The translations under genes were made by a program, and so were the position numbers. A stretch of 64,000 bases of DNA from positions 7,564,001-7,628,000 of the forward strand of contig OZ241829.1 in the NCBI GenBank assembly GCA_965202585.1. Reading direction: 5' to 3'. The notes under the pieces were generated by a model, which worked only from the letters and a program-made list of their open reading frames with translations, was not told the DNA's origin and did not search any database. This document shows, piece after piece, positions 33,616-60,200 of this stretch (positions are counted from its first letter, which is position 1; each line of letters starts with the position of its first letter). This stretch comes from Thalia democratica. Its lineage: Eukaryota.

Positions 33616-34524
33616 TTATTCAGAGAAACTTAAGAAGAGCTGATTCATATAGTACAACTGTACAAAGAATAAAACAATTATTGCAATTAGAAAAACGACT
33701 TGTAACACACTTGCAATGGTTGCGCACCTTTGCGTTCTTTCGCCTTTTGCATCATCATGAAGTTTATCAAGATAGTCAAAGCGCTTGTCAATGTTATCAA
33801 AACTGTTTCGATTATCAGCTGCACTTAGATCAAGCGAATCAAAGCGACTTTCATACGTTTTGTGGTTACGGTCTACTTGCTGCTCGACTCCTTCCAATAG
33901 CGTGTGATCTGACAGCTGGTTTCTTATGACCCTGCTTAATGTGGAGTTCACACGATTGAAATCGAACATTAGCAAGTTGTGATTACTGGTGTTGGGTTCA
34001 TTGAGAATTAATGGTTTATCTCTTCCCAAGTCACTACCATTAAATCTTCTAACATATGGGTCATAAGTGTTTGAGAAACCAAAATTGTTTGAAGCACTAT
34101 TGTTTTTAGAAGCTGTTAAATCAGTACTAGCCAAGTACTTCGTAGCAGCTACACTTGTCGTAGAAGGTACTTGGTTGGTGTTATAAGGTCTTGTACCACC
34201 AAATCTTGGAGAATATGGCGGAGCAGAACTGTTTAAAGATTTTGGAATGTCAGAAGAAACTCTAGAATGTGGATAATTTTCAACACCACTCGATATTCTC
34301 ATTCCTCTACATGCCTGTTCGCTTTGTATACGATATTGTTCGTAAGCCCTTTGTTCATCAGAAGGTGTTATACTGTAGGTTGATCCGGGAAACTTCGTCA
34401 GTGTCGAATAGTTGGCACTATGGACTCCAGGATTTTGATTAGCCATAGAACTGCTAGATACTGGAACATACTGGTAAATGGATTGAAATACTTTCTCACT
34501 GTTTTTCTTCGGCTTTGAATGCAT
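33616..34524 (-). CDS. MHS-family copy M3, 302 aa, intact; predicted tail-anchored coiled-coil membrane protein
   Basis: ATG at 34524 in the same cacctgtcATGCATTCA context as M1 and M2. C-terminal TM-like segment VLQVVFLIAIIVLFFVQLYYM. Confidence 0.88.
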   Translation of the reverse strand: MHSKPKKNSEKVFQSIYQYVPVSSSSMANQNPGVHSANYSTLTKFPGSTYSITPSDEQRAYEQYRIQSEQACRGMRISSGVENYPHSRVSSDIPKSLNSSAPPYSPRFGGTRPYNTNQVPSTTSVAATKYLASTDLTASKNNSASNNFGFSNTYDPYVRRFNGSDLGRDKPLILNEPNTSNHNLLMFDFNRVNSTLSRVIRNQLSDHTLLEGVEQQVDRNHKTYESRFDSLDLSAADNRNSFDNIDKRFDYLDKLHDDAKGERTQRCATIASVLQVVFLIAIIVLFFVQLYYMNQLFLSFSE

Positions 34525-37263
34525 GACAGGTGCTTGTTTTTCAATCAAGTACAAAAGCTGTATAAATAATCATCGTTATAAAATAATTAAAAAAAAATGT
34601 TCTTACAATTGTTATGTTTGTTTATTATGTTTTTTATCTTCTTGTCACCACAGTATATACTCAATGTACTACTTAAAAAAGGCAGACCTTAAAAAGTATA
34701 CAGTTATGTCTTTAAATAATTTACAACTTACAAGTATGGCGTAGTTATTAAGAAAAAAAAACTACTTGAGATTTTATACAAAATAGTACTGTAGAACAAA
34801 TTAAAAATATGTGAATTAATCTTTGATTATTGACTATTTATTTTAAAAAAAATTCTAGAAAAAATTATCAAGCTGTTTTACTTAGATTTGTTTTGTATAT
34901 GTTACGCTAATACTAAATTTAAGAAAAAAACTTTTAGTAACTTTATATCCAAGTTTTTTTTACTTCTATATTAAATAATTTTCATTACACTTAGATTTAA
35001 ACAAAAAACAAAATTTTCTGTAAATATGATCTTAAAAATCATAATTGTTAAGCTGGCAGTATTTTCAGTATAGTAATAATAAACAGCTTTATTTAAATTG
35101 AGTTTTTAATTTTTGATGTCAACTTATGCTAGTATTTATGTTTACTGGTGATATCTACAGCTTTTAACTGTCTTACAACTGATTACAAGATACAATTCAA
35201 TATAACTTAATCATTGATTAAAATTACAACTTTGCAGTATATTTTTCATTCAAGAGACCATTAATGTAATTCTGTTATTACTTATCTAAACTTAACTTAA
35301 AAACTTTAAAGATGTTCATAATTTATAGAAAATAAAACTAAATTTTTACTTAAATGACCAAAACCGCCGTTGATAAAGAGAATAAAGTTTTAGCAAAATT
35401 TAAACTGTTTTGGTTTTTAAAACAAACGAGATAATATTCTTACAATTAAAACTAGTTTGTAATTTTTTTATTAATTAAACCATACTAATGCTTTTAAAAC
35501 TTAGTTTTTTAGCGGAAAGCATCAATAAAAGCAGTTTAGAATTAGAAACCTTTTAAGTTCAATTATTAATTACAATTGAATAACTCCTTCAATGATATGT
35601 TTGAACAATTGTACTTAAAAGTAAAAAAATCATGTATGGTACTGAGTGTGTTTTAAAATAAAAACTCAAAATAGGAAGCAATTTACACACATAACAATAA
35701 TTAATAGATTTTTTTTTGTAGTACTTACATTTTATTTACTTTTGTAGTACTTTTATAGTTATTACGGATGTTACATATATTGTGAACTTTAATTTAAGTT
35801 TGATGTTCAACTTTATAATAACCTAAAGTAGAAACACATCATAAAATACATAACTGTTGTCGTTAATTACTTCTGAAAAGACAATAGCTTAATTTTATTT
35901 GGTAAACACATGCCTACACTTATGCATAAATCTATAATCCAAGTAATACAATATAGTTTTTTAAATTTATTTTAAGTTTTTTGTAACACGTTAAATTTTA
36001 ATTCGTTTTTTTTCTTGTTATAGACATACTACTCGTTTTTAACAAAAATTAAACAACCAATCTATTTGAAATATTTAAACAAATTTCTTAGTTATACAAT
36101 CGTTGTACAATTATGATACTGATAATGAAACCAAATATTTTTTTTCAATCAATTTTGAACAAACTTAAAAATAATTGAATTTACTTATATTGCTTAAGTG
36201 TAATTTAAATTTTTCATTTACTACAAGATAAAAGTGGCTAAAGAAATAAAGTTATTTTGAAAAATTTTTAAGCTACTCTGTTAATTATACTTTTTTAGAA
36301 TGTTCTAAAGTTAGCTAAATACTTATATATGAATAAATCTAACTGAGTATTTTTTTGAAGTTTTATGACGTACAAAGCTGTGCATATTAAATATTAATAG
36401 CGTAACCAGTTACACATTTTTTCTACTACATACTTTGACAATAGCAGTTATAAAAATTTTATGTTTAGTTTTAATTACAGTGTTTTCCTAGTTTACATTG
36501 ATAGTTATTTCTTTATTAAACATTAAATGTCTTTTTGAACTGTTGTTTTTCGAACATATTTATCTAATTTATTTTTTGTATCTATAATAAATAATTTGTG
36601 TACAAAAATACGAAGAGCTAATATAAAAATTAAACATTATAGCTTTTTTTTTAACTGATTTTATTTTTTTTTTACTTTCAAGTACGGCTTTTGTAATAAA
36701 CAAGTTTTAAAAAAAAAGTGATTAAATCAAAGGCTTTAAACGCTTTCAGGAAACATATTTAAAAATAAAGTTAAAAACGACTATAGTATATCAGTATATT
36801 TGTATATTTTATGCCAACAAGTTATATGAGAAAAAAGTTTTAGAGGCTAATGAATGTTAAGTTTGGAACAAACTTATTTGTAGCATTATTTAAAGAAGCT
36901 TGAAAATGTATCTGCAGTTGTATCTTGTAAGCAACTAAATGCCAAAGTATGTTAACAAGCATGTCAAAAAAGAAAATAACATTTTAAGACAGCCTACTGT
37001 TTTAATTTTATTACTTTCGTTAGTCAAAAACAAATTTTTTTGCATAAAACCTGTAATACAACTTAACTGAAATACTTTTTAGTACTACATATAACTGTTA
37101 TATACAGCAGTACTACAACACTTCGTTATCTTAATAACAAGTAAATTAAATTCTAATAAGTTGCAGTAATTATAGATTTTTTTATTACCAACAGTTATTA
37201 ATTTTCACTACTAAACAAAGTGTAACAAAGTAATAAAATATTAGAACTTTACATAAAAAAAAG

Positions 37264-38700
37264 ATGTCTAAATCAAGTCAAGTAAATAAAAACAATTTAA
37301 TTGGAAACAATCTGGGATCCAAATACAATGTTCTCAGCAAACTTGGAGAGGGAACTTTCGGAACTGTATATAAGTGCCTTAATATCACAACAAATCAATA
37401 CATTGCTATTAAGGCAATGAACCCCAAGCATGCAAAAGACGAGTTGGATGCTTTAAAGAGTCTGAAAGACGCTGATGGAAAGTGTAACTACTTGATTGAA
37501 ATACTTGAATGGTTTGAGGAAGATAGTTTAGCTTTCCTCGTTTACCCACTCTACGGACCTAATACAGAGGTAGCTATGGAAAAAAATAATCAACCGTTTA
37601 AGATGCAAGATGTACAAATCATGGCTAAACAGCTGATTGAAGCGACAAATTTTCTTCACAAAAATAAAATGTTGCATACCGATATCAAGACAGCAAATAT
37701 TTTATTAAACAGGTTAATTGTTTCATGTTATATTTTTTACTCTTTAAATTACATTTGTATAACACAGATAACAACTTCTTTTGTTGCCATTATACGCCTT
37801 ACTAAATAATATTTGTTTTTGTACTATACACTATACAAATATTTATTAATAATTAAATATTATTGATTTAAAGATATGTAGTTAACTTACATTTTTATTA
37901 TACAGGTATTACTACGACAAGTCGAAAAATGATTTTTACATGAAGCCTGACATCAAGTTGTGCGACCTTGGCTCGGTGTTCTTTGAAGAAGAATTCGACT
38001 ATGACGTCATAACAACACTTCAGTACCGCGCTCCTGACGTCATAATGGGTCACAAGGTTGTTTAAGTATATTACTAAGAAAGTTAACAACTTTACATAAA
38101 CAAGCAACTTATTATAACTAAATATCTTTAACAGAGTAAGCTAATACAACAAGTTAATTTTCAAAAGAAATATAACCTTATAAACAAAGTACATGTATAT
38201 TTTGCCTTGTAATTAAAATATACTTTATACATTTAAAATTAGTTTTATTTCAACAGATCGGGTATCCATGCGACGTTTGGTCGATCGGCTGCACTTTGTT
38301 CGAACTTTTCACAGGAGAAACGCTTTTCAAGGTGGATACTGTACAGGAACTTTTCAGGAAGATCCACTTGATGATTGATCCTTTTACTGAACAAGAAGTT
38401 CAAAGGATTAACTTGAAATTGACCGAAGATGATAAAAAGAATAGGATTGGTCAAAAACTGACTGAAGATAAGGAAAATGTAGATATTTTGAAAGAGCCAG
38501 AGTTTGCAAAAATAAAAGGCGAAGTTAAGAAGATAGAGTCTTATTTTGATAAGAACGACAGTGGAGAAAAGGATTTGTTTGAATTGATTGTTCGCATGCT
38601 AGATGTAAATCCAGTAACAAGAGTGAAACTTAAAGACTTAATTTTAACAATTACAATTAGTAATATCGATTTTAAATTATCAAATTTTCTTAAAAAGTAG
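37264..38700 (+). CDS. CLK/LAMMER-like CMGC kinase copy B, 347 aa, intact; exons 37264-37712, 37906-38056, 38257-38700
   Basis: Motifs LGEGTFG, IAIK, HTDIKTAN, DLG, YRAPD and PCDVWSIGC. The GT-AG introns are phase-compatible (1044 nt spliced). Confidence 0.93.
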
Positions 38701-40114
38701 ATTAATTAGGTTTTTCACCTCAATTAAAATAACAGTTCATTTGTATGTTTTATATTCTTTCATATTTTAGAATACGATTCATTTTTACTTTTACTTCCTA
38801 CCATTTTGCTATATTTATCTAGACATAAATTTTTGACGTGATAATAACAGGCATAACTAAGTGTTTTGTAGTACTTAACGATAAACTCTTAAATTTCAAT
38901 TAATACACTTAGTGTTTTACTGTAACTTTTGTTACATAAAATTCATACTTTTTGCGGACATTGTAGTAAAGTTCAAGTTGGTCAAAACTACACTGAAGGG
39001 ACTCTAACTCAAAATTAATACAATATCATAAGATAAGAAAAATTATGCTAGCAACGTTTGATATTTGTCGAAAAATGTTGAAACATATATTGGCACATAA
39101 AAAAGAAAAATAATTAGAAAAGTTACTAACTTCCAGGAATATCAAATTAATAGAGATTATGGTAGAAAGATAAACAATTATATGAATAGTTTGTAACTAC
39201 TGAGAGTACTATAAAGAAAATCTATATAAATATTATCTTTCATAAAAAACTAATAAAAAAGGTCAATTCAGTGAAAAGAACCATAGTAATGTCAGTCTTA
39301 TAAGAATTTAAGTAGTCCTACCAAATACATGATATAGGTACGTCAAATTACAAAAAAAAACTGAAATTATATAAATTAAAGTTTAAAATGTATAAAAAAT
39401 AGTCCGATTTCAGTGCGTTTTTAAATTATTATAATGCTGTATTAATATAAAACATGTTTAACAATGTATTGTGCTATTATTTCGCTGTGGATATGAAGAG
39501 GTGATTGTAATGACAGCTTTTAAACCTTATCAGTATCAAAAACACATTTTGCTAACATATATTATATTTTGCTTGAAAACATAATAAGTTCTTATAAAAA
39601 ATTGATTTATTGCAAATGATGTATAATTAAGTAAAGTATTGTTTTTATAATCTAAATGAAGTTAAACAAAAACTCGTATGTTTTTAAGTTCTGTGCCACA
39701 ATAAACTTTTCCGACTGATTTTTAGGTCTTATCGAAATAGCTTTTATAACAACTATAAAATAGTTATTTTTAATTATTGATTTACTAAGGTTTAACTTAT
39801 ACTGTATATAGTATATATATATTATAATAATTATGAAAAAAAGATTGTTTATAAATGATTGTGTTAATGACTAAGTTTTATTTTTGAAAGTTGCTTAAAA
39901 AGTTAGGTAAAAGGAACTCATGTACAAAAAATTGTTTGAACTAAACACTGCAGATACAGTCTATTGCGTGTCCAGAACTTTAAACAGAAAAAATCGATTA
40001 ATTTTTGTTATTATGTTAAAAATACTTCCTTTTTAAAAAAGTTTATACTTAGATTAAAAAAAAATAGTTTTAAACAGTTCAGCTATAGAAATATCTAATA
40101 TTAATATTATATGA

Positions 40115-41420: not shown

Positions 41421-43137
41421 AAAAATTCAAAAATTATTTTATTTTATTTCTGTCTTGTAACATTTTCTTGATCAAAAACATTATTTTATTGATTTTTAAA
41501 ATTATCTTTTAATAAAATTGTCGCTTCAGCTATTTCAGAAATACATTACAACTAAATATTAAATACAACTAAATTGTTTAAAGCTTGTAAGCAATTTATT
41601 TCATTGCGAAAACGTTTAAAATAAGTTCAAACAATACTTTAAAAAATAACATTCTAAACTTTATACTTTCTTTTTAACATCTTATATTGTTTCTACAGTC
41701 TTGAATACTTCTTCGAAATTACAAACTCATATAGAACGTAATATTAAAAGTTAATTTTTTTTTTAAATAAATACAACTATTTCTTTGAAAATTTATCAAT
41801 AATGTTTTACCACATTATTTATGTAAACTATAGAGTTGTAAACATAACAATATTAAAACAAAAATATATGCATAAGTTAGGTACAAAACGTTATAATCAA
41901 GTTGTACAATAATATCATATAAAATTAGCGTTACAAAAGAACTGTACAAACTTTAAACAAACTGCACGATGATAATACTGACAATAAATACGAAATTACC
42001 ATTTTCTTTAAGTAGCAGGTAAACAAAAACACGTTTTCATTTGCTTTTCATTTCCAGTAAAAACTATCAACAACTTTTTGTATACTTAAACACTCATTTT
42101 GATTTAAAGATGCCGTGAAAAATTGACTCATTGTGCAAAATGGACTATGCGACAAAAGTTACCTGTTCTAGTTTAAAAATAACTATTATTAAATGTCAGC
42201 ATCACAAGAAAAAAGTATTTGCTATATATAAAGCATTTTGTATTCTAAGTTTTACTATATACAAATAAACCCAAAACTATGTAACTAACGCTATAATGTA
42301 CTATCTTTACTACTATATAAAAAATAGTCATAATAGTAAAACGGTTGACTTAATTTTCCTGATCATAGACATAAGTTTTTCCAAATATATTTTCTATTGT
42401 TATATGTATCTAAAGTAAACATATCTATAAGTTATATTATTTGTAAACAACTTTTTAATTCATAAACTGTCTATTTTGAACGCTACTTTATAAACTTCAA
42501 TCAATAATAAATATTAAAACTTTTTTATACACATTTTGCGTCATTTTTACAACTTAGCTTAAGTTTTTATAAACTTCAAAATATATACTTAATAAATAGA
42601 TTATTCTACCTTTAATTACGTATTAAAGTTGTATAAAGTATGTAAGAATACCCTTTTGTTTTACAATTAAAAATATCTTTTTAATCTAAAAGAGTTAATA
42701 TTATTTTAATGATTTCTAATTATATACGATATCTCATCCTACATATATTGAATAAAAACAATGACTGATGTTCATTGTTCATAATGCATTTACTCATTTA
42801 ACTGCTAATAACAGTTAACAGACCGAAAATCAGCTACTTCAACATCCGTGCTTAACCCTAAACTATCATTTTAATTTTAATAAAAACATAAATTAATTGT
42901 GTTTAATAATCTTAGATTGATATTAAAGTTTTAAGTTTGAGTCAACTCAAGAACTAACGCTGTCGAATGCTATACAAACAGAGTTTTTAAGCTAATCTAT
43001 CAAAACCATCTTTAACTATCTGTTTGTTTTCCAATTATTTTTAAACTCTATAGTGTACACAATTTCGTTAAACAAAACTGTAAATAAAAATGCAAACAAA
43101 TTTTATTTTAAAAACCATTTATCCGTTTTAAATACAG

Positions 43138-44062
43138 TGTCACAGCCAGTTGACGAAGTTGATCTACTTGCCCAGGAGACTTGGTGAGAGTTGGTAAAGG
43201 AGAATTGTCTGGTTTGACTTGAAAAATCACTAAAATTGACGTCACAATGCTGCCAAGTCACCTAGAGTTTAAGGTTAGCCAACATTAGCTTGTAAACTCA
43301 AAAAAATATTATAATAAAGTATATTTCGTCAAACTTTCATAAGTTAAGAGAAAATTATAAGTTTATTAACTTTATCAAACAATAAGTTTTATATATAGTA
43401 ATTGTAAACTAAGCTAACTAGTTGAAATAAGATTTATTTTTGTCCGAGGAGTCTCTGGAATTTTAAGCGCAACGAGGTCAGGAAACAATTTAATGTTGGT
43501 AACCATGTTAAATTTATCAATGGAAAGCATATGGTTCATACAGGTAACAATAAACGCTAATGTAAACTTTCAGCGATTATTATTACTTGTTCAGCTAAAG
43601 TTTTAGATAATGTTCAAGCTAATATGGATTTTACCTCGTTATAGTTTTAAGTTAATAGTATAAGTAGCTTTAAAGTTATATTTTTATAAAATTATTTTGA
43701 ACTTTTGTTATAGTTTTCTGTGTTTTAGAATTAGTGAATGTTGTTATTATAATAACTTAAATTTTTTAATCAACTTTACGGTTACTGTGTATATAATAAT
43801 AGTAGTAAAAAAGTACAATACGTTTTTTTCGTACTATGAATAATAAATACAAATATTTTTTTATTTTAAAGCTGAAACACATATACTTATTATATTTATT
43901 TAAACAGGTCTAGTATTGACAGTTAAACCGAATAATGTTGTCATCATAGCAGACCTGACACTAGGAAAGCTGGAAGTCTTGCCTCGAGACCTGCACCTAT
44001 TCGATAGGAGGTTTCAAGTACAGCAACTGTTAAAATGTTGTCTAATACAATGTGATGCATGA
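43138..44062 (+). pseudogene. SUPT5H: Unprocessed SPT5 fragment (KOW2-KOW3); exons 43138-43273, 43449-43543, 43908-about 44000
   Basis: Reconstructed PGDLVRVGKGELSGLT*KITKIDVTMLPSHLEFK|ESLEF/KRNEVRKQFNVGNHVKFINGKHMVHT|GLVLTVKPNNVVIIADLTLGKLEVLPRDLHL matches the SPT5 KOW region. It has one nonsense codon and two frameshifts. Confidence 0.85.
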
Positions 44063-46239
44063 TTGAATAAAAAAAAATCAATTAGAAAAATATGTTGTAG
44101 TGCGAAGTACATATAAACAAGTCGAACGAAAATTAAATATTATATTGATTGTTTGTATTGACAAACAGTTGTTAAAATTTTAATTTTATCATCAATTAAT
44201 TTTCAATTTTAAAGTGACAAAATAAGTCTTTACCACTTTGTCTACAAAATGTCTAGAAATCAGCCCTATCGACTTTAAATGATTAGGCCTTTCTTGAAAT
44301 TAACATTGAGAAAAACTACAAAAAAATTGAAATGAAATAACATTAAGTATATTTGTGAAGACTTTGAAGTATATTTGTGAAGACTTTAAACTTATTTATA
44401 AAGGGCTGCCAACCTCTACCTTAGATTTTTAAAAAACTTTTATGTAGCTATAAAATAATTTCAAGAATGAAACAATCGAAATTTACTTTATTTAATATAG
44501 CAATAAATTTTATTTTTAAGTATTTTTAATAATTTAAGTAAACTTAGTAGGATTATATTTTTCTGGGCAGTTATATTACCTTTATTGTGTACAGTTTGGT
44601 TTGACAGGTGCTACAGCAGAATGCGTGTTTTAAATACAAGTGTTTTGTATCTTACATGATTTACCGATTTGAGTAATTTGTACTCAAAGCAATAATATAA
44701 AACTTTTTTAAAAGTTAACCAAGTACAGTAGGTTTTCGCTTAAGTACGTATCTAGTACGTATCTAATTACAACTAATTTTGAACACTGACCTTAAAGTAA
44801 ACTCTACCAATATGAAATTATAAATCTACAGCTTTTTATGTTTGCTTTTTTTGAACTAGAATATCTTAAATAAAAATTCTTTAGAGCAAGTCTTCTACTT
44901 TATTGGGTGTTGTGAATATAAAACTAGTGCACTGCTAAGCTTTAAAACTTTTGTACGCTAGCTATTACATTATACATATAATTCATATTTTTGTTGAACA
45001 GTATTAATAAATTGTCTAATATTGTTTCATTTCGTAAATTTAGATAAAACATTTAAGAATTGATGTTAATGAAAAATACGCAAGAAATAAACAATTTAAC
45101 AGCGGTCATAAAGTTTTCGGAAAAAATTATTACGGCACAGAATCTGAAGTAATACGAGATTTTGTATTACTTCATTCAAATTATAAAACATTACTAAACT
45201 TAGTTCAAAATATTTATTATTATATGATAATATAACATAATAAACTTATTATTTATTTTTTAGTGAATAATAAAACATGTTAGCAAAAGGTGTTTTATAA
45301 ACTGATAAGCTTTAAAAGCTATCAATACAATGAACCTTTTCATATTAAAAGCAAATGAAAAAATAAATGATAACTATTGAAAAGTATATTTTTTATCATG
45401 TTTCTGACTAATATGACATTATACTAATTCAATAATGCTGTGAATTCGGACTTATGATGACGTGTTTTGAACTAAACTCTTTTGAAAACCTTTATGTGAG
45501 TTGACGTTTGTTTATCAGGTTCACTAATAGTATGTATGGGGTATGATGATGCAATTTCTTATAACTTAAGTTTTGACATTTATTCTCGTAATATAAACAA
45601 ACTACTGAGTTAATTTTTTTAGTTTGTTATAGAGTTGTTTTTTATTAAAGATAGTTTATTGAGATAGATTAACAATATTATAATGCTATTAGCTGTTAAA
45701 AATTATTTATTTATAAAATAAGTTTAACTTTATTTTTAACATTCTGTTAAGTTAACAATATTTTTATAAAAAGTTTTTTTTAAATAGACAATTTATGTTT
45801 CAATCCATTTTGACAAGTATCATAAAAAGGAAATAACTAGGATATTTTACTGTTTGTCAGTTCAGACCCTTCAATTAATTTTTGAATAACTTGAACTTTA
45901 TTACAATATCAGCAAAAATTATGACATTTTCAAAAGTCTTAATTAGTTACTACAAACCATCTGTTTTATTAGTTGAAAATTGAAATTTACCGTAAAATAT
46001 TACAACTCACTTTATTGTTCTTATTATTATTATTATATCAAGGTTTTATATATAAGTAAATGATAAAAATTTTAGGAAGTCAAAGTGCAAAATAAATAGT
46101 AGTGTTAAGATATTGAAAAAAAAAAAGCAAATGAATTACTATTTTTATTGAGGTTATTTTTAAAGTAATTAAAAATCCAAACATTCTACTTTTTTAACAG
46201 CTTTAAAAATTTAGATCAGATAAAATAACTAATAATTGT

Positions 46240-46963
46240 TTAGATAAGTTCTTCCAGTTTCACTCTTGTTACTGGATCTGGATTTAGCATGCGAACAATC
46301 AATTCAAACAGATCCTTTTCTCCAGCGTCGTTCTTATCAAAATAAGACTCTATCTTCTTAACTTCGCCTTTTATGTATACAAACTCTGGCTCTTTCAAAA
46401 AATCTATTTCATTTTCATCCTTTGACAACTTTTGACCAACCTTCTTCTTTTTATCATCTTCGGTCAATTTCAAGTTTATCCTCTTGATTTCATGTTGAGT
46501 AAATGGATCAATCATCAAGTGGATCATCCTGAAAAGTTCCTGAACAGTATCCACCTTGAAAAGTAATTTTCCTGTGAAAAGTTCGAACAAAGTGCAGCCG
46601 ATCGACCAAACATCGCATGGATACCCGATCTGTTTAAATAAAACTAATGTTAAATTTATAAGTTTAATTACAAGGCAAAACATACAAGTACTTGGTTTAT
46701 AAGAATATACTTCTTTTGAAGATAATGGCTTACTCTTTTAAAGATATTTACTTATATTAAGTTGCTTGTTTAAGTAAAGTAGTTTACTTACTGAGTAATC
46801 TACTTAAACAACCTTGTGGCCCATTATGACGTCAGGAGCGCGGTACTGAAGTGTTGTTATGACGTCAAAGTTGAATTCTTCCTCCCAGTACACAGAGCCA
46901 AGGTCGCACAATTTGATGTCAGGCTTCATGTAAAAATCATTTTTCCACTGGTGGTAGTAATAC
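46240..46963 (-). pseudogene. Kinase copy C, exon 1 lost; exons 46963-46813 and 46629-46240 are open
   Basis: Near-identical to exons 2-3 of copy D. Homology ends inside intron 1 at about 47085, where the satellite starts. Confidence 0.92.
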
Positions 46964-47085
46964 CTGTTTAACAAAAATGTAAATAAACTACATATTATTT
47001 AATCATTAACATTTGAATATTAATAAATATCTGTATAGTTTAAAATAGAATAACAAATATTTCTTTAGTAAGACGTATAATAGCA

Positions 47086-48407
47086 TTGAAATTTGAGTTA
47101 AATTACAAACGATATTAATTAAAACTGCTTAAAGCACGTTTTTTAATAAAATTATACTGTTCATTATAAATATAAAGTTTAATTTAGACCTTAAGTTAAA
47201 CGAACTATGAGTTACCCCATAATTGAGTATCACAAAATATACTTGAAATTTAAGTTAAATGACAAACGATATTAATTAAAACTGCTTAAAGCACGTTTTT
47301 TAATAAAAATATATTATTCATTAAAAATATAAAGTTTCATTTAGACCTCAAGTTAAACGAACTATGAGTTACCCCATAACCGAGTATCACAAAATATACT
47401 TGAAATTTAAATTAAATTACAAACGATATTAATTAAAACTGCTTAAAGCACGTTTTTTAATAAAAATATACTATTCGTTATAAATATAAAGTTCATTTAG
47501 ACCTCAATTTAAACGAACTATGAGTTACCCCATAATCGAGTATCACAAAATATACTTGAAATTTAAGTTAAACTACAAACGATATTAATTAAAACTGCTT
47601 AAAGCACGTTTTTTAATAAAATTATACTGTTCATTATAAATATAAAGTTTAATTTAGACCTCAAGTTAAACGAACTATGAATTACCCCATAATCGAGTAT
47701 CACAAAATATACTTAAAATTTAAGTTAAATTACAAACGAGATTAATTAAAACTGCTTAAAGCACGTTTTTTAATAAAATTATACTGTTCATTATAAATAT
47801 AAAGTTTCATTTAGACCTCAAGTTAAACGAACTATGAGTTACCCCATAATTGAGTTTCACAAAATATACTTGAAACTTAAGTTAAATGACAAACGATATT
47901 AATTAAAACTGCTTAAAGCACGTTTTTTAATAAAGTTATACTGTTCATTATAAATATAAAGTTTAATTTAGACCTTAAGTTAAACGAACTATGAGTTACC
48001 CCATAATCGAGTATCACAAAATATACTTGAAATTTAAGTTAAATTACAAACGATATTAATTAAAACTGCTTAAAGCACGTTTTTTAATAAAATTATACTG
48101 TTCATTATAAATATAAAGTTTCATTTAGACCTCAAGTTAAACGAACTATGAGTTACCCCATAATTGAGTTTCACAAAATATACTTGAAACTTAAGTTAAA
48201 TGACAAACGATATTAATTAAAACTGCTTAAAGCACGTTTTTTAATAAAATTATACTGTTCATTATAAATATAAAGTTTAATTTAGACCTTAAGTTAAACG
48301 AACTATGAGTTACCCCATAATCGAGTATCACAAAATATACTTGAAACTTAAGTTAAATTACAAACGAGATTAATTAAAACTGCTTAAAGCACGTTTTTTA
48401 ATAAAAT
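47086..48407. repeat. 157-bp tandem satellite, about 8.4 units
   Basis: Unit starts at 47086, 47243, 47400, 47556, 47713, 47870, 48027, 48184 and 48341 (partial). Confidence 0.97.
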
Positions 48408-48414
48408 ACAAATA

Positions 48415-48970
48415 GAGACCTTATAAGACCAACCAAGCACCTTCTACGACAAATATCGCTCCTACAAAGTACTTGGCTAGTACTGATTTAACTGCTTCTA
48501 GAAAAAATAGTACTTCAAACGTTTTTGGTCCTACACGCAGTTATGATCCACCTGTATCGAGATTTTTCGGAAGTTACCTTCAAAAAGAACCTAACACCAG
48601 TAATTACAACTTGCTTATGCTCGATTTCAATCGTGTAAACTCCACATTAAGCAGGGTCATAAGAAACCAGCAGTCAGATCACACGCTGTTGGAAGGACTC
48701 GAGCAGCAAGTAGACGGTAACCACAAAACGTATGAAAGTCGCTTCGATTCGCTTGATCATATTGCAGCTGATAGTCAAAACCGTTTTGATGAAATTGTAA
48801 AGCGCTTTGACTATTTTGATAAACTTCATGATGACGCAAAAGGCGAAAGAACGCAAAGGTGCGCAACCATTGCAAATGTGTTACAAGTCGTTTTTCTAAT
48901 TGCAATAATTGTGTTATTGTCTGTACAGTTGTACTACATTAATCAGCTCTTCTCAAGCTTCTCTGAATAA
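48415..48970 (+). pseudogene. MHS-family copy M4, 5' half lost
   Basis: Homology begins abruptly at gagaccttataagacc (mid-gene) next to the satellite. The frame is open to SSFSE*, but there is no native ATG. Confidence 0.9.
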
Positions 48971-49368
48971 CTTCTACAAATTAATTTCAGACTTCAGACC
49001 TGTGATCCCCCTCTTTTTCAGTGTCACTTTTATCAGAACTTTTTTTTTATACTCTTGTGATTTATTGTTAATTTTTACCGCCTTAGCTGTTAATTCAGTT
49101 ATTCGTTTTTAATAAATATTTATGAAATTAACTTTGTTACATTATTTAATATTATTAGTTAAAAAGATAAATAGTATCAGCATTATATATACTAACTATA
49201 AAACAAGAAAATAATTCACAAAAAAAATAGAAATGAAGAAAAGCAACCTACCTTTAAGGAGCTGTAACATAGATGCTAATTAAAGTAAAAATTCTTAGTT
49301 ATTGAAAATAGTTAAACTAAAAAAATAAGATTAAAAAAGTCAACGAAATTTTGTTAGTTAAAAAGATT

Positions 49369-49440
49369 TGCAGTGCGGACTCGAACTCGGGTCTCTAGAT
49401 TGGAAGGCACCGGTGGTGACCTCTCCGCCATGATTCCACT
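49369..49440 (-). mobile_element. tRNA-derived element (SINE head or tRNA-Gly(TCC)-like pseudogene)
   Basis: A-box-like tggcggagagg, then tgccttccaa, gacccg and B-box-like agttcgagtcc. The acceptor and T stems do not pair. Confidence 0.6.
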
Positions 49441-50280
49441 TGGATGCTATTACATTTTCGAGTATACATAACAAAATTATTTTCATAATCGATCTTTTGG
49501 CAACTATCAATGAAACTCGAACCCAAAATATTTTATTGGAATAAGCACAATGGAGTTAATTTGAAGCTGTATCAAAAAGTAGTGTATAAATACAACATTA
49601 AACAATTTTTGATGATTTTTATACCTTTCAAAGACAGTTCACTTGTTAACACACTATTGCACAGTCAGTTTTACTATTAATCTAATCGCAACCCTTACCG
49701 TTGGTCAGTAATTTTTTTTTCTTAACATATTCAAAGAAAGCTTTTTGGTATCATTGCTCATTTTTCGAAAAAAAAACTGGAAAACTTACAAAAAGTCATA
49801 AAAATAACATAAAATCAAAAATTCCACAACAAAACTTCATTTGAGTCGTTTCAAAATGTTCACAATCTGTTTGTGTGTAGCCACATTTAAAATAAATCAG
49901 CTTAAAACTCCAAGGTCGCTTTTTTTTGATCCCATTTTGCATTGGCGTGGAAATTAGAAAATCGGTTAGAGGTAAGGTGAAAGTTTCTTCAAATCATTTA
50001 AGTCAACACAGAAAAATTAACACCAAAGCATAACTTTTTTAACAACTTTTCTAACCATATTTTAGTTCTTTGTGTTTGTTTTTAATGAAATTAGAACTAT
50101 TCTATTCAATTTATGTTTTTTGAACTAAGTTTATTCTATTCGTTGATATTTGTAAATACCTTCTGTTACGGAATTAGTGTTTTGAAAACGGAATACTTTT
50201 GTACATAGTAAAGTTAAAGAATAATTTAAGATGCTGACTAGTTAAACCTAAAATATAGATAAAATTTTATCAATAAAAGT

Positions 50281-50360
50281 GATTACCACCGGACTCGATC
50301 TCGCGACCTTCTGCTCACGCATCGGGTCGGCGATCGCTGAACCACACAGCCACTTGCTTG
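50281..50360 (-). mobile_element. Second tRNA-derived (SINE-like) head
   Basis: A-box-like tggctgtgtgg and B-box-like agatcgagtcc at tRNA-like spacing. Confidence 0.45.
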
Positions 50361-52856
50361 TTGACTTCAATGCTGGTATATAAAGTTTAAAAACTTTAGA
50401 TTTAAATAAGTTCATTTAGTACTTATTAGTTTACCTTTCTGTAAATTGCTATTATTTTTTTATTTGAAACATATTTACAAAGATAAGACTGTTTTTTTTT
50501 ACACATAACGTTTACGTGAATTTTAATATTTGAAAGTTTTCCATTCAAAAGCTGCATAAGCAGAGCAAGTGTACTTATTAAAGGCAGTTTTGATTTTTGT
50601 TGCTTAAATCTAATTTAAAAGAACAAAACTGATTAAATGCTTTGATAATAAGAAAAATTCAGCGTGCAAAAACTTTTTTTTGTACATTTAAAGTATTAAA
50701 ACTTTATAAATTAAACAAACTTATCCAGCTTTTATTAGCTATTATGGCAAAACAGATGCAAATATAACCTAACAGTTTATATATTATCGAAAATCAGAAC
50801 TAAAGCAAAGGAGATATATTTCAAAATTAAAATCAACATTATAACAGCATTTATATCACAAAGCAAAGTTTTAGAAACATCACAAGCATTTACGTTGTCG
50901 TTTTGATATTTTGTTGAACCAGCCAGTAATGAAAATTATATGGGTATGAATAAAATGTGGTAGAATATCTAAACTTTTAAATCATCAATGCCAGGAATTC
51001 TAATTTACCTGCCTGGACTTTTATGTCAAATAAATTCACGTGGTTGCTTATAATGCTGATAAATTTAAGATTATTGATTGTAATGTCTAATTAAGCAGAA
51101 GTATAATAAAGAATGTAAGGCTGAACTACATTAATCCCAGGCGTTTCTACAGTTAAAAGACCAAGTTTACCCTTCATTTTACGTATGATTTGATTTTTTA
51201 AAATAATGAAAAGTGTTAAGGTTAACCGAGAAAAAAAAGATACTTTAAAAAACTTAAACTTAGTAGATGTACTTCAAAACATAGGTAAGTAAGGATATCA
51301 ATGTCTTTCAAACTAATTAACAGCAAATTTATGCTTAGATATAAGACATTAGAAAGCATTGTATATGATACACATAAAAAACCCTGTAGACCAAAACCTT
51401 GGCTTAGATGGCACTAAATAATTGTTATTAAAATATAACTAAAAATAAAAACTTAAAGTTATAATGGTACTTAGTCGGTGTAACGGTATTTGATTTATTT
51501 TATCAAAAGTACAGAGCTTGTACCTACCATTGTTTATTTATTTTAACACATTCGGTGGTAAATAAAGTTATATATAATGGTTAAATCTAATAGAGACCTT
51601 TAAACTCATAAAGGCTCTAAATGGAATTTTATTTGAAATGTAATTATTACTTAAAAGAAACAGTTTAATGTTTTAAATTTATAGCTAAATACATATGTTG
51701 TTTGTGATATAAAACTAGATACGATCATATAGAAATTAGATTCATGTATATGCAGCAGTAAAATATTTAAGAGCTAATTGCCATATATATTTGTATCTGT
51801 TAGTTTAATTAAGATGCACATTATCCAATACATGGACATATAGTTAGTGTTATTCATTACTATATAAGTTGCTTTATTCAACTTAAAAATATAGAGCAAT
51901 TAAATAATTTATAAAACATACCATACACATACAACTTAAGTGTAAGTGAAATTTATGCTAAACTAAGTTTAAACTGTATAAGACTACAAAGTGATGACGT
52001 AATAATAGTAAAAAGGTAAAAATGAAAAATATTACATAATTACTTGAAAAATCGTGGACAAAAACAGTCTGATTTATTAAAGTCTAACTTAAAAGACGCC
52101 CAAACTGTTTTATACAAGTTAAGACGTAAATACTTACTTGTGTAAATGGAAAACTTTAGCGTAGATTTTCCAAAATTTAAGTTGTTGTGGAGTGACAACG
52201 ATACTAATTAAAACGAGAAGTTAATGTACTCACTTACTTTGTATAGTTTATCAAGTAACCAACAAAAGATGTTATCAGACCTGCTGATCAACAAAGTAAT
52301 AATACATATAATCAAAACAGTGGTCAAACTTGAAATAGACATATACCAAATGTTAAATGTAATATAAATTAATTCAATGTACCTACTACAGAATGTTACT
52401 TAACATATAAGTTTTAGTAGATAATTATAAATGCCATAACAACTAAACAAATGATTAGCTTTGGTGTATTACAAACTTGCCATAACTAACTTTCAATAGA
52501 CCTTTATACACAAACAAACTAAGATGTAATTTATTTACTAGACATACTAGGTATTTAATACTGTGTAACAATGTAATTAGTTAAATGACGACAATAAAAT
52601 GATCCTGATAAATAAAATTACAAAGTAAGTTGAAGTGTTTATTATAGAATAATACCAGGCTGTCTACTACAAATCTGTAGCGTTTGTAGTACGACACCAA
52701 AGATACATACTATAAAACATAAAACTTTACTTGTAATTTATATATGTTAGTATTGAGTTTAAAAGAAAAATAACATACCAAAAAATTGTGCGTAACTACT
52801 CGTACATCAAACAAAAAACTAATTAGGTGCCGACCAGCATAAGGACGCGGCCTAAA

Positions 52857-52959
52857 GGACGGCTTTCGTTATTTGTGCAAAAGTCCCGGGAGCAAGAGCT
52901 GCTCCGATAGGAGCAGCTCGCAGCGGGAGGGACTTATGCACAAATAACGAAAGCTGTCC
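52857..52959. repeat. GC-rich nested inverted repeat (31-bp outer arms, 10-bp inner stem)
   Basis: 52857-52887 vs 52929-52959 are reverse complements with 2 mismatches. The inner gagctgctcc-gata-ggagcagctc is perfect. Confidence 0.9.
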
Positions 52960-53680
52960 GCTACCACTTTAACTCAAAACCGAACTACTTCTTAGAGCTC
53001 AGTACCACACTTTTATCTGGTTTGGCTGTCAGGCTTACTAACTGGGCTCCAAGCGTAATTAGGTTTTCAAGAAAAAAGGGTTGGGAGTAAAAGTGAAAAA
53101 TTTTTCGCCGGCGGAGCCGGCGAAATGACTAAAAAATGATTTTTTAAATAATCTACCCAAAAATTTTCCAAAAAAGTTTTGATTTGGGGAAATCCCCATT
53201 TTGAAAAAAACTTGTGCGGCTTGGCTTAAAAATTAAGTGACTACCTTATAGCGTACTCCTTAAACATAACCCTAACTTACTACCATATAGTTGTTAACTA
53301 AAAAATGAATGTCTTTTTAGGTGGTTGTAGTAGGATTAATCTTAATTTGGAATATTATTAATTTTTCGAAGGTGTTATCATTGTAATAATAAATACCTAT
53401 AACCATAAAATTCGTGTGAGACATGTTAAATAGTCTTTCTTTTTGGAATGTTTGTTGTGACACAGTCTAATAACAGTATCCAAAACTTATAACTTAAATT
53501 TGAGTACTGCTAACTTAAACATTTTGATTTGATGTTATGTTAACACAATATCAATCGAAAACTTTAATAAAATAAATGCTTACTGTTCTTATTAGGCTGA
53601 TTTACAACAAATATTCAAAAAAAAAAGCCATTTTCACATGTCATTCTATAAAGCCACTGCAAATCATTTTTGATCTAGTC

Positions 53681-54426
53681 AGATAAGAGTCTGGCTTTTG
53701 TCAGCTAGTAACAGTTGCTTATAATAACTCTATAAAACATTAAATGGTTATCAAAGATTTGCTAGCTTTTAAATACACTTCATAAACACTACAAGTAACA
53801 AACAACCAGACTCTTATCTAATTTAGTTATATTAGCATTATCAATTATTACACTATGCTACATAATTCTAAAATATTTATCAGGAAAAACAGTGGTTAAT
53901 CATTTCTTGTTATGTTTTGAACAGTTCAGAGACATAGACATGCTTGTATATTTTTTCAAAGACTAACTATTACTAAATGTTCAAATACTATTTGATAAGA
54001 ATTTCTATGGTGACACTGTCTAATAGTATATCATAAGTTTTTGTTCTACATCATCAAACAGCATTTGTATAATGAAACCAACAAAATAATATTTGATTTA
54101 ATGCTACACATAGTATCAAGCTGAAGATTAAACAAATACTTATTTTATAATATCACTATTAAAATTCCAAACAAAGACTATTTTTTAGTACTATTAATAC
54201 TCCAAAAATTAAGTTTAACACATCAGTACAACATAGCCTTTTTATAAAGATCATACATAGTCAGATAAAGGTCTGGTTTTTGTCAGCTAGTTACATTTAA
54301 CTTATCATAACTCCATCAACTATAATAACCACTAAATGGTAATCAAAGTAATAATACACTTAAACTTTGAATTTTACTGTTAACTATAAACACTAAAAGT
54401 GACTGAAACAAACCAGACTCTTATCT
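53681..54426. repeat. Two related short modules bounded by 14-bp inverted repeats (53681-53819, 54263-54426)
   Basis: agataagagtctgg / ccagactcttatct arms; the modules are about 580 bp apart. Confidence 0.65.
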
Positions 54427-54928
54427 AAATTAGTAATATGAACATACAAAAACACTCAACATAAGTCAGTTGATCAAGCTGCCTTAATGTTGCTTGTGTT
54501 CCTACATGTTCACATGTAATAAAGTATATCACTTATACACAAACATTTTACACTATAGTTTTAATTGCTTAGTGGATAAAAACATAATAATAAAACATTT
54601 ACTTTAACCGTTAATAACAATGTGTCTCTAAAAGTGTGCAAAGATTTAAAATTAACTGCTTAATTTTAAAGCTTGTAGCATTCAGAGTTACAACAAACAA
54701 AAGAACAGCTTGATTTTTAGCTCTAAAATTGTAATTGAACATTTTACATTGTAATCTTATTACAGAGATTCATAACACATAAGTTTTGACATATAGAAAA
54801 GCTAATGAAGTTTAATAGTAACAGCTTTTAGTTAATTTTGCACACTTTAGAAACTCTATAGGATATTTTATAATCTAAAATTTTCATTGTAATTAATTCA
54901 TAATTTTATGACTAGCATTTATGAATAC

Positions 54929-55173
54929 CAGGGCTGCCACTCTTCAATTCGAAAACTGTACTCTTTTAACCAAATTTCAGCTTAATTTGAATAAAATTAG
55001 AAGCAGCAAAAGCTGTTAATGTACTTTACTTGATATCAATTGAGTTTGAGCACTAATTTACACTAATGATATTCTATATTTACAAAAAAATGACAATATT
55101 TAATAAAACAATTAATTTTCAAGTATTTAAAATTGAGAAAGCACTACTAAAAAAATAAGTTTTGGCAGCCCTG
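54929..55173. mobile_element. 245-bp CAGGGCTGCCA MITE
   Basis: Perfect 11-bp TIRs here. The paralog at about 397-641 has lost the left TIR. Confidence 0.75.
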
Positions 55174-55912
55174 AAAAATAATCTTATATGAAATTTATTA
55201 TCTTAACATTAACTATGTTGTATAACATATAAAGCACTTACCTCAGTAAGAGCAGTAAACCAAGAACAGACCTGATATTCAAATTGCCACAAGAAGGTTA
55301 GTGGCTACAAGGGTTGATATAGATGACTGCTGTAGAAATAGAAATGTCCAATTTGTTTGTGCTTAATAAAAACTTTTCAGTGCAACTATGATTAAATAGA
55401 AACACATGATAACTCATGTAGCAGACTGCTGATTTGAGACACTTTTTCACCATAAAGGTAAAGAATTTTCTCTGAAATCATGAAAAAAAAAAGATAATTA
55501 ATCATATGGTAAGAGTAGGAGACTGTTGGTTTGAGATACTTTTTCAACATAAAGAAAAAAACTTTCCTCTGAAATCATAAAATATTAGATAATTAATCAT
55601 ATGATCAGAGTAGAATACTGTTGATTCAAGATACTTTCAAAACATACAGACATTATTTACATTTCTTTTCTAGCATAAACAGTTTAAATTTCAACTGTTA
55701 AAGACAATGCTAATATTTTTTTCAAACCAAGTAATTTATTTTATGTGTCTGCTTTTAGTACCTTTTATTACTTACAAAAAGGTAAACTCTAAAATGATTT
55801 ATGAAAGTAAAGTAAAAAATGACAAGAGCTGCTACCAGTAACACAACATTTTACTAATGAATGCAATTTCATAAATATTTCTGCAAACAGAATTGAACAT
55901 GATTATCACAAT

Positions 55913-56155
55913 AAAGTAGAAGTCTGTTGATTTAAGACAATTTTTTAACATACAGGTAAAGACTTTTCTGTGAAGTTGTCAACAAAAAGAAAGTAAAACA
56001 CAAGATTGTTACTATAAAGTAGAAATCTGCTGATTTAAGACAGTTTTTCAACATACAGGTAAAGACTTTTCTTTGAAGTTGTAAACAAAAAGATAATTAA
56101 ACACAAGATCATCACTATAAAGTAGAAGTCTGTTGATTTAAATCACTTTGGCAAC
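55913..56155. repeat. 103-bp VNTR, 2 units plus a partial
   Basis: Unit starts at 55913, 56016 and 56119. Confidence 0.9.
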
Positions 56156-57246
56156 ATGCAGATGATGTAGATTTGTTTTGTGTTCTTTTTTTTCAACCAT
56201 AAACAGTTCAAGTTTCAACTTTTAAAGACAACTTTGATTTTTTTCATACTAAGTGATTCATACTAAGTGATTGGTTTTGAATTGTATGTGCTTGTACTTA
56301 AAGTACCTTTTATAACTTACAAAAACTTATAAAAGGAAAACTCTAAAAATACTTATGTAAAGAAAGTTTAAGTAAAAATTTGATGACCTACCACTCCTAT
56401 GAAAACTTTCCTAAAATGAATTGCAATTTCTTAAAAAATTTCTGCAAACAGAATTTTTGTATAATTACGTAACAAATAAATCTTGTGCAAAAAATTCACT
56501 TGGTGACATTCACGAGTTCTCTCTTCTCTCGCTTTGATAATTTTAAGCTAATTTTAAACTTTTAGCTATACTTTTTTTAAACCTTGGTTTTTTCAAAAAA
56601 AAAATTTACCATCATGTCGAGCGCCGAATTCTGCTTCAAAAAACACCAAACACTTTATAAAAAGGATGAAAAATAAGCAAAATAGAACTTAAAAACTTCA
56701 AAGCTTTGAATTTAAATTTTAAGTTTTGTCAAACTTGTAAAAGGTGTTTCACTTTATCATAATTATTTCAGTATTATTTGTCAAGTTTCACTAAAGTAAA
56801 GATTTAACTTTTTTTTATACTAAAACTTTTTTATGTTTTTCATTTAAAACATAGTGATAAAAATGACCAATAATCTAACACTTTAAGCTAACAGCTAACA
56901 TTTACATTGAAAGCTACTGAAATCTAGTTGATAAAACTTATTGATTAGTGTAGTACTTATTTATAAATTAATGCTTAACTCTAGAATTAAAGAGAACATT
57001 TAGTTGCAATAAGTATGAGAATACACACTTATACAAACACCAATGTTTAGCTTAACTTTACAAACTTTAATGGGACGTATCAAAACACTAACAATGCTGT
57101 TAAGCAAAGTAAAAAAACGTTAACCTATTTTTAAACTTTTGTCTATGTTTTTTTAAAACCTTGTTTTACTTTTAAATAAATTTTACCACCATGTCGAGCA
57201 CCAAATCCTGCTTAAAAAAACACCAAACAGTTTAAAAAAAGGATGC

Positions 57247-60200
57247 ATATAAAAATATTTATAATAGTAAAACGGTTGACTTACTTTTTACTGATCATAG
57301 ACTTAAGATTTTCTAAATATATTTCCTATTGTTATAAGTATCTAAAATATACATATCTATAAATTATATTTGTTGTAAGCGATTTTTTTGATTTATAACC
57401 TGTCTATTTTCAAAGCTACTTTATAAACTTCAATCAATAATAAATATTAAAACTTTTTTATACATATTTTGCGTCATTTTTACAACTTAGCTTAAATTTT
57501 TATAAACTTCAAAATATATACTTAATAAACAGATTATTCTACCTTTAATTACGTATTAAAGTTGTATAAAGTATGTAAGAATACCCTTTTGCTTTACAAT
57601 TAAGAATAACTTTTTAATCTAATAGAGTTAATATTATTTCAATGATTTCTAGCTATATAAGAAGTTAGTTTTGATAGCTCTATATACATATATTGAATGA
57701 TAATAAAGACTAACATTCTTTTGCTAATACATTTATTAATTTAACTGCTGATAACAGCAAACAGACCGAAAATCAGCTACTTCAACACCCGTACTTAACC
57801 CTAAATTATTAAATTAACTTTAATAAAAACATAAATTAATTGTGGTTTATAGTCTTAGAAGGATTTTAAACTTTTAAGTTTGAATCAACTCAAAAACTAA
57901 CGCTGTCGAATGCTATATAAATAAAGTTTTAATGCTAATCTATCAAAACCATCTTTAACTATCTGTTTGTTTTCCAATTATTTTTAAACTCTATAGTGTA
58001 CACAATTTCGTTAAACAAAACTGTAAATAAAAAATGAAAAAAAAAATTTATTTTAAAAACCATTTATCCGTTTTAAATACAGTGTCACAGCCAGTTGACG
58101 AAGTTGATCTACTTGCCCAGGAGACTTGGTGAGAGTTGGTAAAGGAGAATTGTCTGGTTTGACTTGAAAAATCACTAAAATTGACGTCACAATGCTGCCA
58201 AGTCACCTAGAGTTTAAGGTTAGCCAACATTAGCTTGTAAACTCAAAAAACTATTAAAATAAAGTATATTTCGTCAAACTTTCATAAGTTAAGAGAAAAT
58301 TATAAGTTTATTAACTTTATCAAAGAATAAGTTATATATATAGTAATTGTAAACTAAGCTAACTAGTTGAAAGCTGAAATAAGATTTATTTTTGTCCGAG
58401 GAGTCTCTGGAATTTTAAGCGCAACGAGGTCAGGAAACAATTTAATGTTGGTAACCATGTTAAATTTATCAATGGAAAGCATATGGTTCATACAGGTAAC
58501 AATAAACGCTAATGTAAACTTTCAGCGATTATTATTACTTGTTCAGCTAAAGTTTTAGATAATGTTCAAGCTAATATGGATTTTACCTCGTTATAGTTTT
58601 AAGTTAATAGTATAAGTAGCTTTAAAGTTATATTTTTATAAAATTATTTTGAACTTTTGTTATAGTTTTCTGTGTTTTAGAATTAGTGAATGTTGTTATT
58701 ATAATAACTTAAATTTTTTAATCAACTTTACGGTTACTGTGTATATAATAATAGTAGTAAAAAAGTACAATACGTTTTTTTCGTACTATGAATAATAAAT
58801 ACAAATATTTTTTTATTTTAAAGCCGAAACACATATACTTATTATATTTATTTAAACAGGTCTAGTATTGACAGTTAAACCGAATAATGTTGTCATCATA
58901 GCAGACCTGACACTAGGAAAGCTGGAAGTCTTGCCTCGAGACCTGCACCTATTCGATAGGAGGTTTCAAGTACAGCAACTGTTAAAATGTTGTCTAATAC
59001 AATGTGATGCATGATTGAATAAAAATAAATCAATTATAAAAATATGTTGTAGTGCGAAGTAGATATAAACAAGTCGAACGAAAATTAAATATTATATTGA
59101 TTGTTTGTATAGACAAACAGTTGTTAAAATTTTAATTTTATCATCAATTAATTTTCAATTTTTAAGTGACAAAATAAGTCTTTACCACTTTGTCTACAAA
59201 ATGTCTAGAAATCAGCCCTATCGACTTTAAATGATTAGGCCTTTCTTGAAATTAACATTGAGAAAAACTACAAAAAAATTAAAATGAAATAACATTAAGT
59301 ATATTTGTGAAGACTTTGAAGTATATTTGTGAAGACTTTAAACTTATTTATAAAGGGCTGCCAACCTCCACCTTAGATTTTGAAAAACTTTTATGTAGCT
59401 ATAAAATAATTTCAAGTATGAAACAATCGAAATTTACTTTATTTAATATAGCAATTTACTTTATTTTTAAGTAATCTTAAGAGGGTTATATTTTTCTGGG
59501 TAGTTATATTACCTTTATTGTGTACAGTTTGGTTTGACAGGTGCTAAGGCAGAATGAGTGTTTTAAATAGAAGTGTTTTGTATCTTACATGATTTACCGA
59601 TTTAAGTAATTTGAACTGAAAACAATAATATAAAACTTTTTTAAAAGTTAACCAAGTACAGTAGGTTTTCGCTTAAGTACGTATCTAGTACGTATCTAAT
59701 TACAACTAATTTTGAATACTGACCTTAAAGTAAACTCTACCAATATGAAATTATAAATTTACAGCTTTTTATGTTTGCTTTTTTTGAACTAGAATATCTT
59801 AAATAAAAATTCTTTAGAGCAAGTCTTCTACTTTATTGGGTGTTGTGAATATAAAACTAGTGCACTGCTAAGCTTTAAAACTTTTGTACGCTAGCTATTA
59901 CATTATTCATATAATTCATATTTTTGTTGAACAGCATTAATAAATTGTCTAATATTGTTTCATTTCGTAAATTTAGAGAAAACATTTAAGAATTGATGTT
60001 AATGAAAAATACGCAAGAAATAAACAATTTAACAGCGGTCATAAGGTTTTCGAAAAAATTATTACGGCACAGAATCTGAAGTAATACGAGATTTTGTATT
60101 ACTTCATTCAAATTATAAAACATTACTAAACTTAGTTCAAAATATTTATCATTATATGATAATATAACATAAAGAACTTATTATTTATTTTTGAGTGAAT

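Follow-up and report, generated by a model that had tools for sequence, protein, structure and literature searches.

The joint at which two truncated genes meet a 157-bp satellite array in the genome of Thalia democratica is probably one old rearrangement scar, inherited by all copies of an amplified unit of ~15 kb, one of which lies in the window (the whole stretch of 64,000 nucleotides that was analysed, C5:7564001-7628000, in an 802-Mb assembly with roughly 25% G+C). It is likely that the founding event was a single one; it is older than the divergence of the units, and the amplification alone is young.

Self-BLAST of the window showed that the homology between kinase C (42315-47085) and kinase D (57247-62020), which are 95.3% identical, stops at 47085, whereas the homology of the M4 remnant to M1 (8241-9024) and M3 (34191-33262) begins at 48415/48416. 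These limits coincide with those given by a first-pass annotation of this DNA, whose description of two 5'-truncated head-to-head genes with only satellite between them also holds, with the addition of a 7-bp filler at the right junction (Table 1). Together with base 48415, the filler creates a TAG at 48413-48415 that closes the M frame right at the joint. The annotation was likewise correct in placing the kinase cut within intron 1, as seen by comparison with kinase D, where the equivalent of the breakpoint (62020) lies 73 bp into an intron 1 of 195 bp (donor at 62093).

Table 1. Positions in the window of the array, the gene remnants at its borders, the repeat unit and the intact counterparts.
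Feature	Position	Strand	Remarks
Intact head-to-head pair M3 (-) / kinase B (+)	33262-39714	.	Reference of the first-pass annotation
Kinase C remnant block: CLK-like kinase 3' part and downstream DNA	42315-47085	-	Ends at breakpoint Y, intron 1
Kinase C exon 3: C-lobe through stop codon	46240-46632	-	Pfam Pkinase positions 172-257; frame open
Kinase C exon 2: activation segment DLG...APD	46813-46963	-	Frame open
Kinase C intron 1, leftover 3' 122 bp	46964-47085	-	Lacks 5' 73 bp, donor and exon 1
157-bp satellite array	47086-48407	.	8 full monomers and a 67-bp partial
Filler ACAAATA, 7 bp	48408-48414	.	Right junction; no match to either side
Full 13.6-kb repeat unit: M remnant, 8-kb block and kinase block	48408-62020	+	
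M4 remnant: C-terminal ~185 codons of orphan tail-anchored 'MHS' gene	48415-48970	+	Cut mid-exon
Q/P joint within the unit	57244-57245	.	Restricted to array units and the D unit
Kinase D: rest of intron 1 and intact exon 1	62021-62566	-	Part missing from copy C

The kinases of this family match Pfam Pkinase (PF00069), and the best solved relative of D exon 1 is human CLK1 (E = 1.7e-19). CLK/LAMMER kinases carry an EHLAMMERILG signature in the C-lobe; at this position exon 3 reads QELFRMIHLMIDP, a pattern recognisably related and strongly diverged, and the catalytic loop in D exon 1 is HGD instead of HTD. Since the kinase C stump lacks exon 1, and with it the glycine loop, the VAIK lysine and the catalytic loop, no active kinase can be made from it. 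The M ('MHS') gene consists of a single exon of about 300 codons with a hydrophobic C-terminal tail, and a Pfam search with it returned zero matches. In the window copy the M4 frame is open through the natural stop, and the remnant shares 96% identity with M1-type genes and 85% with M3 and M5. With parts needed for function missing and decay seen among the copies, we infer from the sequences that both stumps would be pseudogene fragments without function.

Tandem Repeats Finder reported a single strong array in the window, with a period of 157, 95% matches, a score of 2392 and 8.4 copies, an array length that, like all others given here, is that of the assembly, no single read or contig running across an entire array. 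Monomers start at 47086, 47243, 47400, 47556, 47713, 47870, 48027, 48184 and 48341, the last one being the partial copy, and show 93-99.4% mutual identity; the last four are a recent duplication of a 314-bp dimer. According to the list of open reading frames, none of at least 90 aa lies inside the array. The period is not divisible by 3 and the monomers follow each other head to tail with constant length, so that the array is a non-coding satellite.

The same joint recurs many times in the genome. A 180-bp probe of the left junction found full-length matches of 99-100% at 21 places and a 187-bp probe of the right junction matches of 98-100% at 24 places, all of them on C5 6.98-7.70 Mb and the unplaced contigs C600 and C787, counts that are perhaps somewhat inflated because both unplaced contigs may be redundant assemblies of placed copies. 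A 314-bp array probe detected arrays every 11-28 kb or so in these regions, and the length between paired junctions ranges from about 545 to 3980 bp. Among the junctions that were read, the five canonical left ones are identical and so are the seven right ones, 7-bp filler included. Full mapping covered the 250 kb of C5:7.50-7.75 Mb, and the copies farther away are known through probe matches and 3-kb loci. Seven arrays with 8.4-17.3 units each lie in the mapped region, two of which have other left junctions, located after unit positions 53651 and 53073, with a different monomer phase and 2-3 bp of microhomology; these are best read as secondary deletions from the unit interior into the next array.

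What recurs with the joint is a head-to-tail repeated module that consists, in this order, of the 157-bp array, the M stump, an 8-kb block and the kinase stump as far as intron 1. The full unit in the window has full-length matches of 97-98% at C5:7542548-7556106 and 7683720-7697357, both of which run as far as the kinase breakpoint and meet the next array there, and C600 holds three module copies with a period of 14.8 kb. Units of at least 1 kb, identity of at least 90%, head-to-tail order and a common junction identify these copies as a segmental tandem duplication. In the window itself, a partial unit precedes the array and the full unit follows it, whereas past 62020 kinase D continues and there is no array. 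Inside the unit, the Q/P joint is likely the junction of the tandem amplification. In units without an array, homology ends at 57245 and an A-type kinase follows 1665 bp on, and runs of array units end at the same position, also followed 1665 bp on by an A-type kinase. Conversely, such runs start at unit position 57244-57247 behind a B-type kinase (in the window and at 7670781), an adjacency that is also found at the array-free E locus and in solo kinase blocks. Also missing from the array unit is a stretch of 4.6 kb containing an M2-type gene, which comes after M in both the M1-type and the D/M5 units. An extra 946 bp found in most other copies of the block is absent from the window at 56739, in the unit interior. 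Arrays of equal length were also seen in distant copies: 1801 bp at C5:7555987-7557900 and 7675424-7677337, 2724 bp at 7017975-7020819 and 7697238-7700074, and 1154 bp at 7347867, 7358648 and 7373445 as well as on C600, which points to recent duplications of at least 100 kb or to redundant assembly of C600.

An unrearranged form, which the first-pass annotation had proposed to look for, exists next door. The D/M5 unit, 15 kb away, is the unrearranged counterpart of the array unit and continues beyond 62020 with intron 1 (GT donor at 62093), an exon 1 encoding the glycine loop, the VAIK lysine and the HGD catalytic loop, an intergenic stretch of 2.4 kb and the complete M5 just outside the window. 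Across the genome, D-type kinases intact through the breakpoint are restricted to D and one copy on C281 (97%, collinear over 3.8 kb), against 21 truncated ones. The equivalents of both breakpoints are 3387 bp apart in D/M5, 3593 bp in B/M3 and 4854 bp in E/M, which agrees with the loss of about 3.6 kb that had been estimated by analogy to the M3/B pair. Moreover, the DNA between the breakpoint equivalents of these three intact pairs is mutually homologous, which makes the head-to-head arrangement an ancestral trait of the family. Within the window, M4 has its closest intact-type relative in M1 (7714-8795), which is frameshifted soon after the equivalent of the breakpoint, where its sister at C5:7508391 is open.

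The copies of the module differ in their state of decay. By their identity to the window copy, the M stumps form three classes, at 99%, 96-97% and 94%, with a maximum difference of 6%. Among ten that were read, five are open and five share one 1-bp deletion that shifts the frame, and judging from match lengths, 18 of the 24 have a net loss of 1 or 2 bases. Both the deletion form, at place 48592, and the open form occur in public data, in three independent runs. This shared frameshift, together with the divergence of the copies, means that open frames are no sign of recency. Kinase exons 2 and 3 have kept an open frame in each of the five canonical copies read, with pairwise pN/pS of 0.2-0.9, and the translation of exon 2 is identical in four of the five truncated copies. 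In C5:7.50-7.75 Mb, the coding stumps (window 46240-46632 and 48500-48900) are 93-96% identical between copies, whereas the non-coding flanks reach 98-99.7%. This pattern suggests that the coding stumps may have been patched by ectopic gene conversion from diverged paralogues that are homologous in the coding parts only, and where such paralogues are functional, patching would also give the stumps an apparent pN/pS below 1.

Several other explanations have to be weighed against an inherited scar. An assembly join through the satellite, which the first-pass annotation saw as the main alternative, is suggested by the tendency of satellites to attract misjoins, by the lack of any read across the whole 1.3-kb array and by the location of some module copies on unplaced contigs. 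Short Logan contigs from four public runs of four studies, placed on 45800-49800, contradict it: a 288-bp marine-metagenome contig bridges the left junction (46838-47125, 1 mismatch) and a 139-bp contig of another, independent run bridges the right one (48378-48516, 0 mismatches), and misjoins would not regenerate two base-exact junctions and the 7-bp filler 20 or more times. A misjoin at the array is thus very unlikely, its chance being close to nil. The same annotation had proposed one recent event, judged recent from the open frames, that silenced the kinase C/M4 pair. Both stumps are indeed open in the window copy, and the missing stretch equals the intact M3/B pair in size, but a recent deletion with satellite filler specific to this locus is highly improbable: the junctions are identical at 21-24 places, sister copies have diverged by as much as 6%, many of them with a frameshift, and the flanks of the window copy are part of the amplified unit. 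What stands of that proposal is the likely singleness of the founding event; its assignment to the window locus falls with the identical junctions (21 left and 24 right), and its recency with the frameshift shared by five of ten sister M stumps. It is also unlikely that selection amplified a functional module, in which the array would act as a promoter or chromatin element and the product would be a shortened tail-anchored protein of about 117 aa from the first in-frame ATG, a fragment of the kinase C-lobe, or both. The open kinase exons with pN/pS below 1 in all five copies would fit such a module, and so would the large excess of the truncated unit over the intact D-type unit. Nevertheless, half or more of the M stumps are frameshifted, the low pN/pS is of a kind importable by conversion from functional paralogues, the kinase stump has neither the ATP-binding lobe nor the catalytic loop, and the stretch is present in no public run on record as RNA.

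A more serious competitor, possible although clearly less probable than a scar left by a loss, supposes that the pair lost nothing, and that the joint is a tandem-duplication junction or a fusion of two cluster units, connecting a D-type intron 1 to the middle of an M1-type exon with capture of the satellite; kinase D would then be the terminal copy that continues into its original exon 1. The nearest intact relatives of M4 are M1-type genes (98% for the initial 120 bp, 96% across 556 bp), the nearest relative of kinase C is D (96-97%), and a D-type kinase and an M1-type gene are partnered in no locus examined. Moreover, M1-type genes come after A-type kinases and share their orientation, the full unit in the window ends exactly at the breakpoint and is followed by the intact exon 1 of D, and just two intact D-type kinases are found against 21 truncated. 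On the other hand, no unit was found that leads from an intact M1-type gene through the unit interior to a first array, the runs of units begin and end at 57244/57245 beside ancestral B- and A-type contexts, away from the array breakpoints, and the solo kinase blocks behind B-type kinases would require additional recombination. As the 57245/57244 joint is found only in array and D units, the amplification joint probably sits at that point, with the array joint inside the unit, which, together with the unrearranged D/M5 neighbour, favours a replacement within one unit. A simple deletion in a D/M5-like unit would nonetheless require later conversion of the M stump or replacement of M5, given the identity of M4 to M1-type genes (96%) and to M5 (85%), and it is this closeness to the M1 type, with the missing 4.6-kb M2-type stretch, that keeps the duplication or fusion joint under consideration. 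Two exon-1 fragments, at C5:7289196 and 7031842 (88%), were considered as a relic of a D-type/M1-type pair and discarded as not diagnostic, since B-type genes reach 89-91% there.

Under the preferred reading of one inherited scar, the ancestral unit would have held an intact head-to-head pair like that of the neighbouring D/M5 unit. One unit would then have lost about 3.4 kb, made up of 73 bp of intron 1 together with exon 1, the upstream DNA that both genes shared and the 5' half of M, and a piece of a dispersed satellite would have been captured at the break through end-joining or template switching. The rearranged unit would have multiplied by unequal exchange and larger segmental duplications, after which the arrays may have lengthened and shortened, with paralogues patching the coding stumps via gene conversion. 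The functional cost of the loss was probably nil, as many intact paralogues remain.

The satellite belongs to a family that is dispersed over unrelated sites and split into subfamilies on C4, C5, C6 and C10, so that the search for further arrays of the unit suggested by the first-pass annotation was successful there and on C600 and C787. Further sites were reached via the loose ends of contigs, although one 30-mer from such an end is absent from the assembly. A subfamily of 82% identity with other flanks occurs at C5 6.10-6.52 Mb, with two copies 16.3 kb apart, at least six copies lie at C4 81.82-81.87 Mb in a macro-repeat with a period of 10,613 bp, and the 314-bp array probe detected more diverged arrays on C6 and C10. 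Alignment of the C4 flanks with those at C5 6.1 Mb revealed nothing in common but the repeat. At C4:81816272-81819301, two subfamilies (about 82% and 92% to the window unit) adjoin in opposite orientation, and at least 14 arrays of 94% identity are found on the minus strand of C6 21441795-22058797 with a spacing of about 16.8 kb.

A local origin of the monomer was rejected, as the dimer compared with the three intact kinase-M gaps under permissive scoring gave only AT-rich matches of about 60%. The arrays at unrelated sites and the absence of real similarity to the missing stretch indicate that the satellite is foreign to the locus, as the first-pass annotation had held of the filler. A transposon carrier was also discarded, because independent sites show no conserved non-repeat termini and the canonical junctions no extra conserved sequence. 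The 157-bp family appears once per unit in at least four macro-repeats of unrelated content (C4, 10.6 kb; C5 6.1 Mb, 16.3 kb; C5 7 Mb, about 15 kb; C6, about 16.8 kb). It is conceivable, although doubtful, that the satellite seeds or drives the amplification of 10-17-kb segments, the truncated pair then being the closure joint of one segment; array-closed circular DNA with rolling-circle replication, or a preferred site of unequal exchange, might provide the route. The presence of the satellite within the macro-repeats may also be mere hitch-hiking.

Comparable situations have been described in other organisms. In Drosophila, the euchromatic clusters of Rsp-like and of 1.688 satellites on the X (Sproul et al. 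2020, PMC7403614) also consist of short arrays of dispersed satellites within gene-bearing DNA, with microhomology or short filler at the junctions and growth by unequal exchange. Many of those clusters have one junction in common base for base and the other variable, whereas here the common junctions derive from a copied 15-kb unit and not from repeated insertion into an older satellite, and the array abuts two truncated genes. The Cast satellites of Tribolium castaneum (PMC11610590) similarly form arrays of several kb in gene-rich euchromatin of many chromosomes, with subsets of arrays that have common flanking sequence; that work contains no gene-truncating replacement, and here the association with 10-17-kb macro-repeats dominates. 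Tribolium satellites have poly(A)/(T) insertion sites (PMC11610590), and the A8 tract that directly follows the left breakpoint in intact D recalls them, a weak hint by analogy. In common bean, the Co-2 cluster and the khipu satellite (PMC6102362) offer another example of a fast-evolving multigene cluster between satellite blocks, with unequal recombination, segmental duplications and gene loss. It differs in its plant subtelomeric location, its 528-bp unit and its NLR genes from the present case, which is found at about 7.6 Mb in an animal chromosome arm and involves CLK-like kinases and an orphan membrane protein, the array-linked genes being mostly stumps. Finally, non-autonomous transposons with central tandem repeats (Helitron/MITE) also scatter arrays of 150-180-bp monomers through euchromatin, but the arrays described here have no conserved termini and directly touch the kinase intron and the M exon.

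For annotation, the kinase and MHS fragments at the at least 21-24 array loci should be treated as pseudogene fragments of one module, not as independent losses, and array-flanked copies are to be left out of counts of family members. The structure is an ordinary satellite plus segmental duplication in a decaying gene cluster, and its mechanism is not new; it provides a clean case, resolved to the base, in which a breakpoint that destroyed genes took up a dispersed satellite, later brought to high copy by segmental amplification, and an animal example outside insects for satellites within gene-rich DNA.

Other members of the kinase family show peculiarities of their own. In the A-type kinase (window 5998-6342, compared with 46449-46976), exons 2 and 3 are fused, APDVIMGHK being followed by IGYPCDVW, whereas a 180-bp intron separates them in kinases B, C, D and E; contigs of three runs that skip 46627-46816 probably derive from intron-less A-type-like paralogues. 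Kinase E (C5:7714244-7719541) was considered as a case with the breakpoint but no array and rejected, as a 100-bp profile places the end of its high-identity tract about 500 bp earlier. Its identity to the D/C type is 94-96% across exon 3 and the DNA downstream of it, but only 64-91% over the 500 bp that precede the breakpoint and 83% for exon 1; it looks like a mosaic gene that may have arisen via conversion or recombination.
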